A DNA stretch of 63,488 nt, filler included, from Klebsormidium nitens (Eukaryota; Plantae; Klebsormidiophyceae): NCBI GenBank assembly GCA_000708835.1. It is 8 parts of 8 records of this genome, joined end to end, with 100 filler letters (N's around TTAATTAATTAA, not from the genome) between each part and the next. Parts side by side here need not be neighbours in the genome. Positions count along the whole stretch, not along the records: positions 43,770 to 52,916 come from DF237799.1; 7 more parts are not named here. The stretch is one strand, 5' to 3'. A program made the position numbers and the translations under genes. This document shows, piece after piece, positions 43,770 to 52,916 of the stretch; the stretch's first letter is position 1, and each line of letters opens with the position of its first letter. Under the pieces are notes generated by a model that did no database searches, was not told the DNA's origin, and saw only the letters and a list, made by a program, of their open reading frames with translations.

Positions 43770-44595
43770 TAGCGGCAACTGCCGAACAGTTCTGCCGTCG
43801 ACGGGGCAGACAGTGGCTTCTGCATCAGCTGTGAAGGGTGTTGTTAAGGACTTGTCAAAGACGTACACGCTGCTCGGTTTCCCCGGGCACGAGAATCCTG
43901 CAAAGGCGGAACCTGTGAAGTCCTTCCGAGACGGGTACGAGAAGTATCTGCACGACGAAGGGATTAAAGTACAGAGAGCGAAAGTATTCTCGGAAAAGAA
44001 GCTGGACGCTCTCTTGCGGTTTTTGTCGGAGCGCCTGCAAGCAGAAACCGATGCTCTATAACTTTGTACGTTACTGATGGATCAGGCCGCAGTTTTGTAT
44101 CTCTGGGAGTCGTTAGCGCGGGGGAAAGAGTGCGGAGCTCTAAGCGCCGACCAGGTGGAAGGAGGGGCGACTCCTGCGGCCTATCCTGGTTGGAGCAAAA
44201 CAGTCAGGCAGGAGCCCAGCGCACGGATTCCCCTCGCCCAGCCAGCGGCGTCTTCCCGCCTCACTTTCGTAGAAGCTACAGCCCGGTTAGTGAAGGGTTT
44301 GGAGCTAATCGGGGATCACGCGACCGATGGTTACCTGTTCCGCGCCCAGAACCGCCAGCGAACAGGCTTCTCTCCCGGGCCGATCTCCAGTGCGTGCCTG
44401 CGAAAACGGATCCAGCGGCGCCTGCAACAAGCTGGTCTCTTCGAGGGAGAAACTCTGCATAGTTTTTGGAGGTCGGCGGTTCAGCACGCCGCCGTTAATT
44501 TGAATTACAATGTGAAGCAGTTGATGGAATTAGGACGGTAGAAAAGTTACTCTGCTTTCAAAGTATACGTGGAAGAGGTTTGGCAGCGGCGTTGA
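43770..44595 (+). pseudogene. Tyrosine recombinase of the retrotransposon, inactivated
   Basis: One frame: ENPAKAEPV..ESLARGKECG (first Arg)..WSKT..GYLFR..TLHSFWRSAVQH (HxxR decayed to HSFW)..LGR*KSYSAFKVY (catalytic Tyr). Stops at 44059-44061 and 44539-44541. Confidence 0.88.
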
Positions 44596-44668
44596 ACAGA
44601 ATTGTTTACATATCAATGTCATGACCCAGTCCTGCACACCCGTGCCTCATGCCTGCGCTATGCAATGT

Positions 44669-47600
44669 CTACCACCTGATGCCGAATGCTCTCAGCTTGT
44701 ACATCGCTGGGTTTACAGTTCCTTGTGAAACTCTGAAACTGGGCGCACAAATGCTTGCGCTGCGCGGCAACTCCAATGGGCCCGACAAGCAGGCCTCCGC
44801 GCCAATGTTCTGGAGCGCCATCCACCAGTTGGTGGCCGGCGCTTCTGGTACGACGAGGATGCAGTCCGTCCGGAACCGCCGAACCGACTGGATGACGTCA
44901 CTCAGCAGCCGCACGGGGGGAAAGACCCATGCCACGTCGCCCGGCGCCAGCAGCTCGCTCCAGTCGGACCGCATAGCGTCTGCTGCCAGGCCCACCGGCG
45001 CCAAGTGCAGGCTCACGAACCGCTCCGTGATATGCCACGTTTCCGAAGCGAATAGGTCGATCGCCGGCTTTACCCCGAAGTGGATCAGGACCTTGCGCAC
45101 CTCCGTTTCCCCAAGCCCCCAATCTGAGCTGTCCTGATGCTTGCTCAAATCGTCTTCTTCCTGCATCTCCGCCCGCGGCCGCCATTGGGCGATGACGTCA
45201 AAATCCGCCTCGACGCACAGCTCGAAGAGCTGCCTCAACGCCTCGTTCACGTCCGGCGCCCGGCTGTTCATGGCGTTCACAGCCCTTACAGCACCCTGGT
45301 TGTCTCCCAAAAGGAGGACCGCCGAACCCTTGAGCGCGTTCCCCGCGCGCGCGCGCGCCTCTGACAGCACCCGGAGAAACGCGACCATCTCGCGCGCGGT
45401 GCTGGACATGCGCTTCTCCTCGTCGGAGAGGGCCCCGGCTACCGTCAATTTTTCCTTTCCTGGGATCTTGATTGTACCCCCGAACCCCGATTCCGATGCG
45501 TCTGAGCCCGCTTCAACTGCAAGCTGCGCGGGTACCATCGCCGCCCATTCCACTCGTCGAGGCGAAGCAGGAAAGTCCTCGCCGCTTGCCGCGCAGACTC
45601 CGGCGTCACGAAGACGTCATCCCANNNNNNNNNNNNNNNNNNNNNNNNNNNNNNNNNNNNNNNNNNNNNNNNNNNNNNNNNNNNNNNNNNNNNNNNNNNN
45701 NNNNNNNNNNNNNNNNNNNNNNNNNNNNNNNNNNNNNNNNNNNNNNNNNNNNNNNNNNNNNNNNNNNNNNNNNNNNNNNNNNNNNNNNNNNNNNNNNNNN
45801 NNNNNNNNNNNNNNNNNNNNNNNNNNNNNNNNNNNNNNNNNNNNNNNNNNNNNNNNNNNNNNNNNNNNNNNNNNNNNNNNNNNNNNNNNNNNNNNNNNNN
45901 NNNNNNNNNNNNNNNNNNNNNNNNNNNNNNNNNNNNNNNNNNNNNNNNNNNNNNNNNNNNNNNNNNNNNNNNNNNNNNNNNNNNNNNNNNNNNNNNNNNN
46001 NNNNNNNNNNNNNNNNNNNNNNNNNNNNNNNNNNNNNNNNNNNNNNNNNNNNNNNNNNNNNNNNNNNNNNNNNNNNNNNNNNNNNNNNNNNNNNNNNNNN
46101 NNNNCCAGAAATCCTTAGTCCCCGTTAGCCCGTCGTCGAGGTAGCTCGAGATCGGGATGCTTCTCAGCCGCAGCTCCTTGGCCGCTTCCTGCGTCAGCAG
46201 GGTGTAAACGAAGCAGGCTTCCGACCACCCAAAGCACATGCCGTTGTAGTGCATGTACACGTCGCCAACCTTGATGCCGAAGTACTTTCGGAAGGCCGGG
46301 TGGATGAGGAGGTGGTAGTATCCGGCCTTGAAGTCCCAGGTCGTGAAGAAGCCCTGCTCTGTGAGAAAGGTGAGCACCTCTCTCAGGGTTTCGTACTTGA
46401 ACGCCTGGCGTTTTGAGAAGAGGTTAACGTATCGGGCGTTAACCACCAGCCGCCCCTTCGGCAAGTTAACCACCCCCAACGGGTTAACCACCTTCGGTTT
46501 GCCGGCGCCGGGGCCGTAAACTTCGAGCGTCCCGTTGACCACCATTTTTACCACTTCCCCAACGGCGAACTCGCTGTTATCGTAGAAAGACCGGTGGTTG
46601 TCGAACTCTACCGGGTGGGGAACCTGACCCGACAACATTGCGTCCACTTCTGCTGTCCCCACTGCCCGGGCGAGCATCGACTCGACCTGCTCCCGCTTTT
46701 TCGCGTCCGCTTCGTCCGTTCCCACGAACTGCGGCTTGACGCCATTCCGGAGCATTTTTAGGACCCGTTTCGAGGATTCCCTCTTGGAATCTTTCAGCAT
46801 CTCTTCCCAAGCTGGGAGGTGCCTCCCAAAACTGCCGGCGACAAACTCGTCCGGGTCGTACGCGTGCGCCCCGACTTCTTGAGCCAGTCCTCTATCTCCG
46901 CCTTCTGTTCCTGCGTCATCTCCTCGCCCGATCTGGGGCCCGGCGCCAAGTTAAGGTTCTCCCGCATGGCTTTCCGGAGCTGCTCTCCGTCGGGATTGGT
47001 CGCACTCCTTACTCGAAGCCCCATGAAGAACTGGTGGGAGCAATTCTGCAATTGCGCTGCGCTCCCTCTCACGAGAGGGTCCGACACTAAGTCGGGTTCG
47101 CTCTCGTCTTGCTCAAACTCTGGGGCGATCGATTCCGGGTTCGGCGGTTGCGCGGGCGGTTTTGGTAGACTGGCGCCTTCCTCATTTTCTGTGGTTTGCA
47201 GCTTACGGTCGGGCGCTGCTTGGATTGGCTCGCTTCTGCTCGAGCTCGGCGGGATAAGCGTTCCGTCCTGCCGTTCCGAGGCCGTTTTGCCCCGACTCTG
47301 TGGGCTGACCCGTTCGGGTGCGCTGGTTTCGTCCGCCCTTTGCGAAGGGTCGGGCCGCGTGCAGACCGTCTCGTTGGCCTTTTGGTCGGGTGCAGATTCC
47401 CTGCCAAGGTTCAGGAAGGTTAGCTTATGTAGAGCCGCAGCGGCGGTCTCGGAATCGAAGAAAACGTGGAGGTTCTGTGGACGAGAGTATTTTCTGCACA
47501 GGAATAATCTCGGTTCCACTAACCCAAATATGGGGAATTTGACCCCGAAAGCTGCACCGCCCGCGCGGGGTCGCTTTACTTTTGTCGTAGGCCGGGGCAT
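44669..47600 (-). CDS. DIRS-type pol: reverse transcriptase, RNase H and N6-adenine methyltransferase-like domain
   Basis: GRLVVNARYVN, WDFKAGYYH, MCFGWSEA, YLDD; RNase H SDASESGFG..TAREM..GDNQGAV..DDLSK; MT IDLFAS..DAMRSDW..WVFPP. Apparent frameshift near 46850 (LGRHLPAWEEM); N gap 45625-46104. Confidence 0.93.
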
Positions 47601-48203
47601 CTTATAGAGGTGAAAAATTTGTTCAGACGCCCCGGGTTAGTAATCTGCGGCGTCTAACGAGAACTTAACCCGTGGATTAACCGGGTTCGGCAGGCGTATT
47701 TACACCGAGTTCCGCGGTTAAAATTGCGACTCCGATAAGTCGTTCTGGCGGCCGCACGTCAACTCCGCGCTCTCGTCGATCAGAAGGAATCTCCATATCT
47801 GCATCCTTTACTAGTTGAGCGCAACATAAGATCGTTATTCACGTTCATGTGATGCAAAATTCATCCTAATGCCGCCGCACGCCGGGCCACGTATCGCCTC
47901 GCCGGAAGGAAAAGATCTTACTGATTGCATTCATTTTGCTTGTGCAGGCGCCACAAGGAAAGGATGGGCCGAATGAAGAGCCCATTCTCGGGCCCGTGAG
48001 ACTGAAGGACTGCCATGTAACATAACGTCAGTTACGTTCGTCGAGAAAGGAGAGGGCTGTCTTGAATCAGAATACTGGAGCCTTTTCAAACGTCTCGCCC
48101 GGGTCCGCCGACAGTCTTTCTGCTAAATCCTCGTCTCCCCTTTCCATCCTAGGATGTTCTGTTTAAGTTTCTCCTGTGTCTCTACGTTTTCTTGCAAATC
48201 TCC

Positions 48204-49740
48204 TTACCTACGGCCTGATCTATTTGCCGGAGCGCGATTGTCGCGATCTCCTCTATCATCGCGCTCGCGATCTTCAGGGCCTCGCTTGCCCCCCCAACCG
48301 GACCCTTTGCCGGCGCCCCCGGGTCCGTTCCTGTTGACCGGGGAGGAATGAGTCAGCGAAAACATGCCACTTCGGGGCCGCTTATTAACTCTTAATCTGA
48401 GGGCGTTCTTTCTAAGCCTCCGCCTGCCATTTCCGGCTCGCTCTCGTGCTATAATTGGCCTTAAGGCCGCCCATTGTGGGCAATCATCCGTTCGGATGTC
48501 CTGCCCTTTAACGGGCTGCTTGTTTCGATTCATACAATCCTCACTTCGGGAGGAGATGCCGCTAAATGTCTGACCGACAGCACCAGCAAGCTAGTCGTTC
48601 GGCCAGGTGCAGGACGGCCAAAATCGCTAACCTGATCCAGGCAAATTCTTTCCTGCGCCGCCACAATTTTCCAAGATTGTTGCTGCCGAATTCGTATTTG
48701 ACTAGCTCAGCAATACCTGACGAACTCCTAATGAGCCTCTTCTTATTCTCGTACATCGAAGGCTTTCTCGTCGACTAGATTGCAGGACATTCTCACCTGC
48801 CGAAGTTGTTACCGCCGCCTCCGGCGCCGCGCACGACGTTGGGGCGTGCGTGACCCTCGCCCACTTGCTCCGCCGCTTCTTTACGGTGCTCTTCATAAGC
48901 CTTCTTGATCTTCTTCTCCAGGTTGCGCACCGTCTCTGCTGACCACCCACTGCTGTCCCCTGCTTCCTCCAAGGCCAACTTCATGTCGGAGACGAATCCA
49001 TCAGCTAGGTATTCAAGGTCGAGCGACACGAAGTTGATTTGATTCGCGTAGAAGTACACTGCAGCCATCAGATGAGCCACTTTTGGATCGGGCTCCTTGT
49101 AAATCTCGAACATCTGCTCAAGCTTGGTGTGCCACGCCGGTGAATCACGGGGGATCTTCCTGAGTGCTGCCTCCATGTGGGATATCAGGGATCCCTTCTG
49201 CACGAATTCTTTAAATGCCCTCTCTAAGCGAGCAGCTCCCCCTGCCATGTCAGCTTCCCGCATAAACCCAGGGGTTAGCGCGTTGATCACCGCAGCTCCC
49301 GGCGTAACAGCTGGAGGATCAGGGATTCTGACCCTCCTTGCTGGCTGCTGTTCCGGAATCTGCTGCCCCTGAGGTGGCTGCTGAGCCTGGTCTGCATGCC
49401 CCATCTGACCCAAGGGCGCCCCGGGTGGAGCCCCCGGGATGGCCACCTCAAAAATATCATGCCTCAGCCCAAATTCCCGGAGCCCGGTGAGCAGCGTGTC
49501 TTGGGGGTACCTAGTACCCATGCCAATACTGAGCTCCGTCTTATCAACCAGTCTGTGCAAAAGCTCACCCCTTGCGTCTTCTAGCCAGAACTTTCCTGAG
49601 GCGGGATCCACATCTACTACTCTAGCCCAGAGCTTTCTTCCCGAGCCGGGCAATTCATGCAGCAAGTACTCTCCGATCAGCCCTTGCGGTCCTGCTAAGT
49701 GTATGAGGGTAGCCAACTGAGGCTCCATGCCCTGCGCCAT
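48204..49740 (-). CDS. ORF1/gag candidate of the YR element, unknown family, probably spliced
   Basis: 315-aa open frame from ATG 49740, GT donor after 48797, basic R/G/D-rich frame 48533-48204. Clear paralogue at 61724 (ARLE..V.KG.L.SH..WHTK..VAHLM.AVY.YA..VS.DLE.L). Confidence 0.55.
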
Positions 49741-50427
49741 CTCTATGTCTCTCTGGGCCGCTTCTCAGTGCCCTTGTACGGGGGAGGCCCCTTTAGTGTG
49801 AATACCCCCAAACCTACAAATGTCCCTAGAGGGCGCCTCGCCAGGCGCCTCCTCTTGCTTTTGAACAAACACGACCAATAAATTGAGGGTCTAACGCCAA
49901 GAAATTATGTAACGTCTTCTAAACTAGCTGACGCCTCAGCGCCAGGGTTTTAGAGGTTTAACAGCCGTCGGCCGCTCGGCCGACGGGTTGCGCACGCGCG
50001 CGCTTAGTTTTTCCCCGGTCGGTTGAGGACGGCGGCTAGCATAGCTTATGCTACACCGAGAGCATTCCCGGTCCTAAAACACTGTAGGACCTGGGATCAT
50101 CCCGACCGTCGCAGATCTTATCGTGGCGGAAGCAAGCATTCCCCTGCCGGCTGTACAAAGCCCACGGGCCACCGTCACTGTACGGACGGCCGTATACCTA
50201 CCGGTAGGTATTTTAAAAGTTATCCATCGATATAGATTAAATGACATCGCGAAAAGCAAATCGCAACTGCCCGGAATCGTGCTAAACGTTAAATCTGAGT
50301 AGCAATCAGGGCTATCTTGACTTTTCGATTTTCGAAAAGGCAAGGCAAACGCAAAATCACGGCAGCTCCGGACCATGTTAAACATTAAAACTGACCAACA
50401 ATGTATTATGTAGGGTGAACTTGTCAC

Positions 50428-50680
50428 CGGGTTCAGTTCAGGTCCATTCGGGTTCCTTCTGAACCCTGAATATTTGAACAAGAGGACCGGGGCGGACCGC
50501 TCTGCGCCGGGTATAAGCTAAACCTGGCTTCAGTTCAGCTTCATTCGGGTTTCTTCTGAACCCTGAATTTCTGAACAAGTCGACCGGGATGCCTAAGGCC
50601 GGCGGCCCCCGGGCGCCCGCTGAACCGAGCTTCAGTTCAGCTTCATTCGGGTTCCATCTGAACCCTGAATTTCTGAACAA
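50428..50680 (-). repeat. Second copy of the repeat/spacer array (three repeats), within a block homologous to about 26820-27602
   Basis: Reverse complement gives the same 61-bp consensus. Same divergent last repeat and last spacer, followed by about 280 bp of shared unique sequence (50146-50420). Confidence 0.92.
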
Positions 50681-50833
50681 ACGGACCGGGGCCTGGGGCC
50701 GGCCGCATAGCATATTGCTCATAGGCTATAGCCATGTTTCTGAATATTGCATGTACTATAAAAGGACAGAAAATGGTGTCTATTTGATGTCCTGTATTTG
50801 GAAGTTCAGGCCGCCACCGGCACTTAGTCCATG

Positions 50834-51900
50834 CTTGGTGTGCACATCCAAGTTTTCGCTCTGGAGGCCACTCTCCGGTGCACAAAGGAACTTCTCAAGA
50901 TTCACAGATCGCATCAGGTCGTCATACAGATGGTTCAGCCTTTCCAGCAAGAGGAGCGCACAAAATTTTCAGAAGACAGGAGCGTCAATGACCATCTATC
51001 GACGCACAGCATGCCGAGAAAAAGAAAGCAAGGCCAGCGCCAGCAGTTTCAAGTAATAATTATCGCGTGACTGATGATGCCATGCAAAGGGGTCTTCGAA
51101 AAAAGGCTATACGATTCTCTTGTGGTGCTGCAGCTCCAACTGCTTACAGAACTGCCAGAGCAATATTCAAGAAATGAATAACCACTGGAATGTCGAACCC
51201 TATTCTTTTCTCCAGACTGTTATTGCCTGATATTTGCCACTGACCCAAACACACCGTGGATCGGAGCCCCTAGCATGCTAACTGACCTTGAGCATTTTAC
51301 AATCAGGCATAGCACTCGAGCAAACTCCCAGCAGGACAGCACTAGCTAAAAGTACGCCTAGGTAGATCAAAAGGACTAGAGTGTCAAAACTTACACCGGA
51401 CCAAAAGAAATTGAACTTCACGGCGTGCATCGCCTTCCGGTCTCCGCGCTCCTCAACCGCCTTCATGATCTCATTCAGCGCCTTAATCAACGGACTCTTG
51501 TTCGTGCTACTAGGGGAAACAAGAATGTGCCAACGGATCAGCACCTGCGTCCAGTTGATCATCCGATTTGCCAAGGTTACTTCAGCCTTGAACCCAGTGG
51601 CATGCGACACCGCGGTGATCGAGGAACCATCCAATGAGAGCAATCCCTTTTGAACCTTTTGATCTGGCCACTGCTTCGACACACTCTCCAACCTTGGCCG
51701 GTAGCATTGATTTGACATCATTTGGAAGAAGGTCTCCCGCAGCCTCAAGCCGCTTCTCCAACTCTTTCCCCTTGCGGATCGCCATGCTAATTGTAGCTTG
51801 TATACTGTGAGCAGATCCTGCGACCGTCCAAGGAGGAAAACCCTTCCAGAAAACCTCCTACACAAGAACCACAGTTCACCACAGAATGCCTCCCCAGCCT
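50834..51900 (-). pseudogene. Frameshifted gene fragment of the same unknown family as 29088-32883
   Basis: Minus strand 50911-50834 encodes RSVNLEKFLCAPESGLQSENLDVHTK, 21/26 identical to 29094-29171. Upstream coding-like segments AIRKGKELEKRLEAAG.. and FKAEVTLANRMINWTQ..FNFFWS lie in different frames. Confidence 0.55.
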
Positions 51901-52580
51901 GCATGCAGGTGCAGGAGAAGCACGTCAAGTAACGCAAGCTCCTACCTACTTGACACAAAACCGAATTCACTTCTGTCGTAATTTACGAGGCAAACGGGAG
52001 GTTATGCAGATTTCCAGCTGACCGGTTGGCCCTGGGCCAGAAAGGAGGTTTTGGCAGACACTGACAATCGGCGCCCGAACCGCCTGCGCGGATTTTATGC
52101 CTATGTTCACGCAATTTCCGAATATATAAGCTCGTTGAATTGATGGCGTTGCATTAAAAGACCGTGAAACCCTGAAAGCCTACAAGCCAGCTATTCAACC
52201 GAACCCTAAGAATCTCATATGCTTCAAACCACAAAAGCCGGGCGAACCCTCATATAAGTAGATAGTTGCTACAGACGCTTAGGTCTCTAGCCCGTCTCTA
52301 GCTATTCTTCAAAGTCTGAACATATGAACAAGCTGCTCTCCAATGAGAACCCCAGATATTTGCAATACTAAAGCGTGCAAGACTACAAACATACATTCAA
52401 TGATTCCCTACAAACCCCGACGACACACGGATATTGCAGATGTGCAATATCACAGAGGCTGAGTATTTGACGTGCGGCTGCTTCGCACCCCAACCTCCTA
52501 TGCTAGTGATCATACCCGTTCCACAGAGTTGCGAGACGGCTGCTGTTGCAAATGATCTGACCCAATCTGCGACCCAAATT

Positions 52581-52897
52581 GAAACTCCGAAGGTGGGAGG
52601 AGCACGCGCTCCGCACCCTAACCCACCCTAACCGCCATACTAACCCCACCCGTCCCAGTCGCGAAATCGTGGCTGCTGCACAACACCTTGTACACACTGA
52701 AACCCTCAAGGTGGGGAGGAGCACGCGCTCCGACTCCGCACCCTAACCCACCCTGACCCCCTTACCAACCCCACCCGTCACAGTCACGAAACCGTGGCTG
52801 CTGCACAACTCATGACAACACTGAAACCCTAAAGATGGGAGGCAGCACGCGCTCCGCACCCTAACCCACCCTAACCCCCATACCAACCCCACCCGTC
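52581..52897. repeat. Minisatellite, about 120-bp unit x2.6, with CCCTAA-like motifs
   Basis: gaaaccc..ggtgggaggagcacgcgctccgcaccctaacccaccctaacc..ccccacccgtc at 52581, 52699 and 52823. Confidence 0.88.
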
Positions 52898-52916
52898 ATT
52901 GATACGCTACAGGCCT

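Follow-up and report, generated by a model that had tools for sequence, protein, structure and literature searches.

Retrotransposons of the DIRS order are defined by a pol with a reverse transcriptase (RT) plus an RNase H, with or without a methyltransferase (MT) domain, in combination with a tyrosine recombinase (YR), and PAT elements by split direct repeats (PMC4157794, PMC3266345). The MT domain is a DIRS feature (PMC3266345, PMC5890265), and Iyer and Aravind call it catalytically inactive (PMC3537659). Within the PAT group, an inverted YR is the hallmark of kangaroo, which in addition lacks a gag zinc finger and carries internal repeats between its MT and YR (PMC4157794, PMC3266345). Szitenberg et al. 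(2014, PMC4157794) conclude that YR was inverted on more than one occasion; therefore, a common orientation is no proof of kinship. Among further members, TOC1 is a non-autonomous DIRS element (PMC9940879), and antisense transcription and RNA interference control are known for DIRS-1 (PMC7192593). According to Iyer and Aravind (2012, PMC3537659), complete elements with an ALOG-type recombinase were unknown in streptophytes; these authors proposed a recombinase of this type as the ancestor of the plant ALOG transcription factors (LSH1, G1). For the streptophyte alga Klebsormidium nitens, an earlier report lists DIRS and Ngaro families at the level of repeat classes (10.1101/835561). Here, we present an analysis of one element of this kind, a single copy of which was read as DNA in the piece at positions 43770-52916 (DF237799.1) of a window of 63,488 nucleotides (nt) of K. 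nitens DNA, i.e., the whole stretch along which all positions are counted; the analysis covered this piece. We found that the piece very probably carries a degenerate copy of a multi-copy DIRS-order retrotransposon family that is kangaroo-like in layout. The family to which it belongs is new, but the kind of mobile element is a known one.

Results

The original prediction was that of a tyrosine-recombinase retrotransposon of a streptophyte alga with an RT-RNase H-MT pol and a convergent antisense YR, and this identification is supported by the pol domains and by the YR homologues. All parts that it listed (array, open reading frame 1 [ORF1], RT, RNase H-MT, and YR) were found at their predicted positions, nearly to the base (Table 1). 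As in DIRS-order elements, RT (RVT_1 with YLDD) and RNase H (by its fold) lie within one pol, and, as in the MT-bearing DIRS1 and PAT groups, an MT-fold domain follows C-terminal to RNase H. YR, which is broken in the present copy, has homologues with PF00589 and stands in place of a DDE integrase; Pfam gave no match to a DDE integrase or a protease, with neither rve nor RVP among the ten minus- and plus-strand ORFs scanned. As in PAT/kangaroo elements, YR is inverted relative to pol, which is shown for the present copy only. The DIRS1-like arrangement, with inverted terminal repeats, an internal complementary region, and a YR co-oriented with pol, was not found: YR is antisense, and the termini are missing.

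Table 1. Features of the element copy and its surroundings in the piece from DF237799.1
Feature	Position	Strand	Evidence
Tyrosine recombinase (YR) pseudogene	43771-44595	+	67 homologues; family hidden Markov model (HMM) score 416, E 1.5e-128
Spacer between convergent YR and pol stops, 73 nt	44596-44668	.	No repeat elsewhere in piece
Methyltransferase-fold C-terminal domain of pol	44672-45136	-	AlphaFold (AF2) model, VIA-align; stop 44669-44671
RNase H domain of pol	45152-45532	-	Foldseek, VIA-align, conserved D/E/D/D columns
RT connection segment, frame 2 (WDDVF...WNGRRWYPRS)	45478-45624	-	tblastn, family HMM
Assembly gap inside pol	45625-46104	.	Homologue alignment across edges
RT N-terminal part, fingers and palm to YLDD, frame 2	46105-46950	-	Pfam RVT_1, homologues
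Frame-0 ORF, 280 codons, low complexity; exon 3 of KFL_008500030	46797-47636	-	Weak conservation
Unconserved spacer from ORF1 to frame-0 ORF; holds exon 2 of KFL_008500030 (48325-48215)	47637-48792	-	
ORF1, 311 amino acids (aa), intact	48793-49728	-	Homologues, profile search
Tandem array, 2.6 copies of ~100 bp	50432-50693	.	TRF

Many of the 67 YR homologues carry PF00589 (P0037, Phage_integrase, E 3.9e-9), and they have the catalytic-type motifs ARGKE, WSKT, HSFRR, GRW, and KVY in common; the YR pieces of the present copy themselves gave nothing in a Pfam scan of all ORFs. The N-terminus of YR (~125 aa in the full-length P0094 and P0099) is lost at the piece edge at 43770. The remainder is interrupted by in-frame stops at 44059-44061 and 44539-44541, of which the latter replaces the W of the conserved LGRW, and the HxxR motif reads HSFWRS vs HSFRRS in intact homologues (TGG at 44467-44469, R>W). 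The last 17 codons (KSYSAFKVYVEEVWQRR), with the presumed nucleophilic tyrosine, lie downstream of the second stop. In P0034 and P0041, the same arginine codon decayed independently to give HSFCRS (R>C vs R>W), a change to be expected when a CGN codon containing CpG lies in methylated repeats. The original prediction had called the copy dead on account of two YR stops, the loss of HxxR, and a pol frameshift, and each of these lesions was seen. With two stops and the second arginine lost in YR, and with one or two frame breaks in pol (see below), this copy cannot transpose itself; only ORF1 is still open.

YR has its natural stop (TGA) at 44593-44595 and pol, on the other strand, has its stop at 44669-44671; the 73 nt predicted between the two are exact (44596-44668) and free of gaps. 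Alternatively, the antisense YR might not be native and the locus might have arisen where two truncated copies meet tail to tail, or by a local inversion in a dead copy, so that the family would be a same-strand one resembling DIRS1 or TOC3. Dead copies often rearrange, and a single copy was seen as DNA. However, pol and YR both reach natural, family-conserved stops within 73 ungapped nt, where two truncations would have to coincide, and neither gene is followed by a second pol or YR fragment. Similarly, family HMMs detected no second pol, YR, or ORF1 fragment in 46950-48790 or 49765-52916. Moreover, the order ORF1 ... YR recurs on K. nitens scaffold 617, and compact contigs of 5.6-7.8 kb hold pol and YR. 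We consider a non-native YR very unlikely and retain an antisense YR as part of the element.

The RT region of pol (46950-46105, minus strand, frame 2) matches Pfam RVT_1 with an E value of 9e-6 and 26 bits, under the cut-off of 29.6 bits. It is 65-76% identical to P0014, P0020, and P0025, which carry PF00078, and its YLDD is at 46143-46132, just ahead of the assembly gap. The RT frame ends ...SSYLDDGLTGTKDFW at the gap edge and, beyond the gap, frame 2 reopens with WDDVFVTPESARQAARTFLLRLDEWNGRRWYPRS. P0014, P0020, P0022, and P0025, in which RT-RNase H is uninterrupted, align as far as 46105-46120 and then again from 45624, between which 108-109 of their residues have no counterpart. Because homologues align at both gap edges, the flanks are collinear parts of one pol in one orientation. 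Judged from these alignments, the gap of 480 N overstates the missing sequence, which amounts to about 324 nt (~108 aa of the RT palm/thumb). That both sides of the gap are in frame 2 follows from the arbitrary N count and proves nothing.

Near 45528, pol passes from frame 2 to frame 1 at a place where homologues read WYPRSVAIEAGSDAS unbroken; here, tblastn of P0002, P0014, P0020, P0022, and P0025 gives two overlapping matches in different frames, as the predicted frameshift requires. From ~45528, pol is open to its stop. A further frame change, at ~46870-46960, separates RT (frame 2) from the frame-0 ORF (47636-46797); in P0120 and P0117, two K. nitens models from a sister subfamily, the stretch matching the frame-0 ORF and RT is in one frame. 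This change could reflect a second frameshift, a programmed frameshift, or a patch in the P0120/P0117 models. The frame-0 ORF has no Pfam match; its C-terminal third, which continues into the RT frame, shows weak conservation in other copies (P0102 matches 47126-47010, E 1.6e-7), and the ORF is probably an N-terminal extension of pol. More distantly, pol is matched by the animal DIRS-like RNase H-MT proteins P0030-P0032 (E 1e-13 to 7e-5).

An AlphaFold model of RNase H-MT, for which 16 family members were used (mean pLDDT 81), divides into two domains. The first (residues 31-155) is RNase H: VIA-align gives Z 12.9 with a root mean square deviation of 2.5 Å across 113 residues, Foldseek matches it to RNase H of archaea and retroviruses at E 4e-6, and the conserved acidic residues lie in SDAS (45505-45494), TAREM (45400-45386), GDNQ (45307-45296), and EEDDLS (45160-45143). 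Residues 161-315 have a class I S-adenosylmethionine-dependent methyltransferase fold, with adenine-N6 enzymes prominent among the VIA-align matches (Z 11.3 for PCIF1, ~10 for KsgA/Erm/DIMT1, 8.8 for EcoDam, 8.7 for M.TaqI, and 8.4 for T4 Dam). Thus, the predicted MT domain of pol is real as a fold; it has no Pfam match. Motif I is DLFAS (IDLFAS at 45061-45044), and motif IV is FPPV throughout the family (VFPPV at 44926-44912) and not (D/N/S)PP(Y/F/W). Judged by these motifs, which agree with the catalytic inactivity described by Iyer and Aravind (PMC3537659), the domain is probably inactive.

P0100, P0104, and P0105 begin at the same MEPQLA as ORF1, and the stop after NF[GA]R is common to P0100 and P0103, while P0101 ends ...AR there and the JGI models P0104 and P0105 end differently. 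Because start and stop are common to independent homologues, ORF1 is a complete single ORF. The original prediction of a spliced, intron-bearing ORF1 was not supported: ORF1 is self-contained with 311 aa, and the spliced form is that of the public model KFL_008500030. A profile search of 1.84 billion representatives returned 47 ORF1 relatives; those with their source looked up come from K. nitens, JGI/IMG, and Logan, save one repeat-rich protein of Biomphalaria glabrata (P0138, KAK6970479.1). In the latter, positions 46-114 of the ORF1 profile match 13 tandem stretches (E 7e-9), possibly because a barrel domain is repeated there or because of sequence composition.

For ORF1, Pfam gave no match, the Atlas no usable match, and BFVD nothing meaningful. 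The AlphaFold model of ORF1 is modest (pLDDT 62) and has three parts. Residues 1-95 form a predicted Tudor-like beta-barrel (pLDDT ~80), which VIA-align matches to the LBR Tudor domain with Z 7.4 over 66/66 residues and to PHF1, RDM15, and 53BP1 with Z ~7, while Foldseek matches to Tudor domains have TM scores of 0.6-0.73 and E values of only 0.02-0.2. The middle is a disordered P/Q-rich linker. The C-terminal helical bundle matches generic helical bundles only (Z 9 or less) and nothing specific; a capsid-like fold is neither supported nor refuted. ORF1 has no zinc knuckle because it has no cysteine. A protein in the gag position with a Tudor-like barrel and no zinc knuckle would suggest chromatin or RNA binding.

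The ORF1 segment (47600-49740) is not peculiar to the present copy; as the original prediction implied, other copies carry ORF1 beside pol. On K. nitens scaffold 279, GAQ86252 (pol) and GAQ86253 (ORF1) are adjacent accessions, and on scaffold 617, one gene lies between GAQ90233 (ORF1) and GAQ90235 (YR). In addition, ORF1, pol, and YR are found together on JGI contigs of 7,818 bp (P0105, P0009, and P0046) and 7,685 bp (P0110, P0014, and P0083), and pol and YR on JGI contigs of 5,569 and 29,999 bp; these four linkages were inferred from equal 'longest contig' values and not directly seen. We conclude that ORF1 belongs to the element. About ten homologue-bearing contigs span 7.3-8.1 kb, which suggests an element unit of ~7.7 kb; the distance between the start of ORF1 and the position expected for the start of YR is 6.3 kb. 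Scans of metagenome contigs (two scans, with the pol profile and the YR profile) and of viral contigs (one scan) found no related DNA; therefore, the JGI/IMG relatives are not in those collections.

The predicted repeat array is present at 50432-50693, 700 nt upstream of the ORF1 ATG (102-bp unit, 79% matches, TRF score 302). In a fuller model of the element, it would start at or beyond this array, and a spliced ORF1 mRNA would join downstream exons, possibly as an ORF1-pol fusion. KFL_008500030 joins 49740-48811, 48325-48215, and ~47471-46797; exons 1 and 2 are each followed by a GT donor, and exon 2 is preceded by an AG acceptor, while the acceptor of exon 3 was not seen. P0117 and P0120 also join ORF1 to pol. 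Moreover, a ~7.7-kb element leaves ~0.7 kb upstream of ORF1, which is weak evidence for an array inside the element. However, gene predictors impose GT-AG and skip stops in copies of transposable elements, homologues end at the ORF1 stop with the conserved tail NF[GA]R (P0100, P0103), and exon 2 and the 1.15-kb spacer match no other protein or HMM. The piece contains no array-like repeat elsewhere. In addition, the sign of the AT skew flips near 49900-50000, short of the array, a hint that the element may not extend to the array; this skew is weak evidence against the array as a part of it. We consider the fuller model unlikely and keep ORF1 as a single-exon gene.

One array unit as DNA folds no better than shuffles (z = -1.0). 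At 47618-47638, the start of the frame-0 ORF is 75-76% complementary over 20-21 nt to the array core AACCCTGAATTTCTGAACAAA (50559-50578, 50661-50681); this complementarity is short and may be due to chance. Adjoining the array, a match to the W.P.H...C...LP.TG part of the YR N-terminus at 50652-50876 (minus strand; tblastn of P0078 and P0096, E 7e-4 and 0.005) would, if real, derive from a further recombinase gene; with the family HMM, this match was not recovered, and we judged it to be probably due to chance.

Besides two tandem arrays, there are no direct repeats of at least 20 nt in the piece; the element's 3' end lies beyond the piece, and its 5' end is undefined. Inverted repeats of at least 20 nt were also not found in the piece in a seed-11 scan, the termini being outside view; at looser settings, 46700-52916 yielded 12 weak pairs, each 14-21 nt long. 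The 73-nt spacer between MT and YR has no copy elsewhere in the piece, and internal repeats of the kangaroo form were thus not found.

The second tandem array (52590-52898; 2.6 copies of ~125 bp) is rich in CCCTAACCC-type motifs and reaches the piece end; no link to the element was found. Upstream of the first array, an open frame of 234 codons (51281-51982, minus strand) has no family match and only DUF3987 at E 0.014. Scans of the piece for tRNAs and with Rfam were empty.

GAQ91773.1 (KFL_008500020, partial), from a scaffold of 31,706 bp, matches the translation of RNase H-MT with 100% identity. The same scaffold carries GAQ91774.1 (KFL_008500030), whose first exon is ORF1, also with 100% identity. 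KFL_008500020 (P0001) splices across the assembly gap over 44672-46755, and its C-terminal exons (44396-44271 and 43949-43770, minus strand) are the translated antisense strand of YR; this fusion of pol and antisense recombinase is an annotation artefact. Because both loci are annotated as ordinary hypothetical proteins and ORF1 is intact, one might suppose that the ORFs are host genes or domesticated derivatives, such as a recombinase-derived DNA-binding protein, and not a transposon copy. This is extremely unlikely: the family is multi-copy and divergent, its nearest relatives being 67-87% identical and its contigs numbering in the dozens, both YR and pol are broken in the present copy, and other copies are broken differently (HSFCRS in P0034 and P0041), and the gene set is typical of retroelements. 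Thus, our analysis shows the two public K. nitens models KFL_008500020 and KFL_008500030 to be transposon artefacts.

Discussion

Altogether, our findings argue strongly for a DIRS-order element with an RT-RNase H-MT pol and an antisense YR. Several points weigh against this conclusion. The RT match is under the Pfam cut-off, and a third of RT is inside the gap; the antisense position of YR is known from one copy alone; each end of the element is either missing or undefined, and the search for terminal or internal repeats was negative. Moreover, the placement in the DIRS order would rest on gene content and not on a tree with reference elements, and the mechanism outlined below is inferred from established DIRS elements and not drawn from this copy.

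In the proposed layout, the minus strand would read ORF1 in the gag position, a variable region of ~1.8 kb, and pol with RT, RNase H, and the MT-fold domain, and 73 nt past pol, the YR gene would lie on the opposite strand, with a reading direction from the element's 3' end inward. A sense genomic RNA would encode ORF1 and pol and then be reverse-transcribed, while YR would be under a promoter of its own within the 3' terminal region and would insert the cDNA by site-specific recombination and not by means of a DDE integrase. We speculate that convergent transcription could yield double-stranded RNA or mutual regulation.

The N-terminal domain of YR gives a lead to the ALOG-type recombinases. 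Because the piece (43771-44000) holds only the C-terminal half of this domain, the comparison uses family homologues. In P0094, P0096, P0098, and P0099, HxxxC is conserved (HSQSC, HSARC) and CxC is absent. The top Atlas cluster for the domain is ALOG_dom (score 0.95, 177 shared features), with the caution that only one of the ten best family-bearing matches agrees with the top match in family or clan, a pattern that marks the ALOG_dom assignment as probably wrong. The Pfam ALOG_dom model does not match the family YRs, and a PDB sequence search with the YR N-terminal profile gave 0 matches at E up to 10. The ALOG-type DIRS1-like retroposons of Ectocarpus and marine animals (PMC3537659) have, as does the Klebsormidium element, RT-RNase H followed by an MT called catalytically inactive. 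By eye, in their supplementary alignment, their YR also shares the helix pattern, HxxxC, GNPxK...V..[YF], W[GS]KT.R, GYLFR, EGETLHSFR, and WKS...F..Y. In contrast, the Klebsormidium YR is without the CxC half of the zinc ribbon and has an insert ~11 aa shorter, and in the ALOG-type elements, the gag contains a zinc knuckle and YR lies on the same strand as pol, where in animals it is fused to MT. That the Klebsormidium family is a streptophyte-resident relative of the ALOG-type DIRS recombinases is a tentative idea, which we regard as doubtful. If true, the source of a family of land-plant developmental regulators would have its nearest transposon relative alive today in the Klebsormidium family, intact members of which occur in other Klebsormidium data, and this ALOG relative would be paired with an unusual, kangaroo-like inverted layout and a Tudor-like ORF1. 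The ALOG link is the only part of our findings with wider reach, and it is unproven.

Among described elements, DIRS-1 of Dictyostelium discoideum shares with the Klebsormidium element the gene content of the order (gag-like ORF, RT-RNase H-MT, and YR); unlike the latter, it has inverted terminal repeats plus an internal complementary region, and the YR ORF of DIRS-1 overlaps pol and shares its strand. TOC3 and TOC1 of Chlamydomonas reinhardtii are likewise algal DIRS/PAT elements without a gag zinc finger; however, the YR of TOC3 is on the pol strand (PMC4157794). An unnamed PAT-like element of Daphnia pulex has, similarly to ours, an inverted YR and no internal repeats between MT and YR (PMC4157794), but its host is an animal. 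The Klebsormidium element resembles kangaroo most in layout, by which the two were compared; its originally predicted place in a PAT/kangaroo-like lineage, as against a DIRS1-like one, is putative. The literature agrees with the original prediction that an antisense YR is characteristic of kangaroo (PMC4157794, PMC3266345). Kangaroo, from Volvox carteri, also has an ORF in the gag position without a zinc finger, an RT-RNase H-MT pol, a YR on the opposite strand, and a host of the green lineage. It differs in that its internal split repeats lie between MT and YR, where the Klebsormidium element has 73 unrepeated nt, and in that its host is a chlorophyte and not a streptophyte. Our findings thus extend a kangaroo-like layout to a streptophyte alga, which bears on whether YR inversion in the green lineage is ancient or recurrent (Szitenberg et al.).

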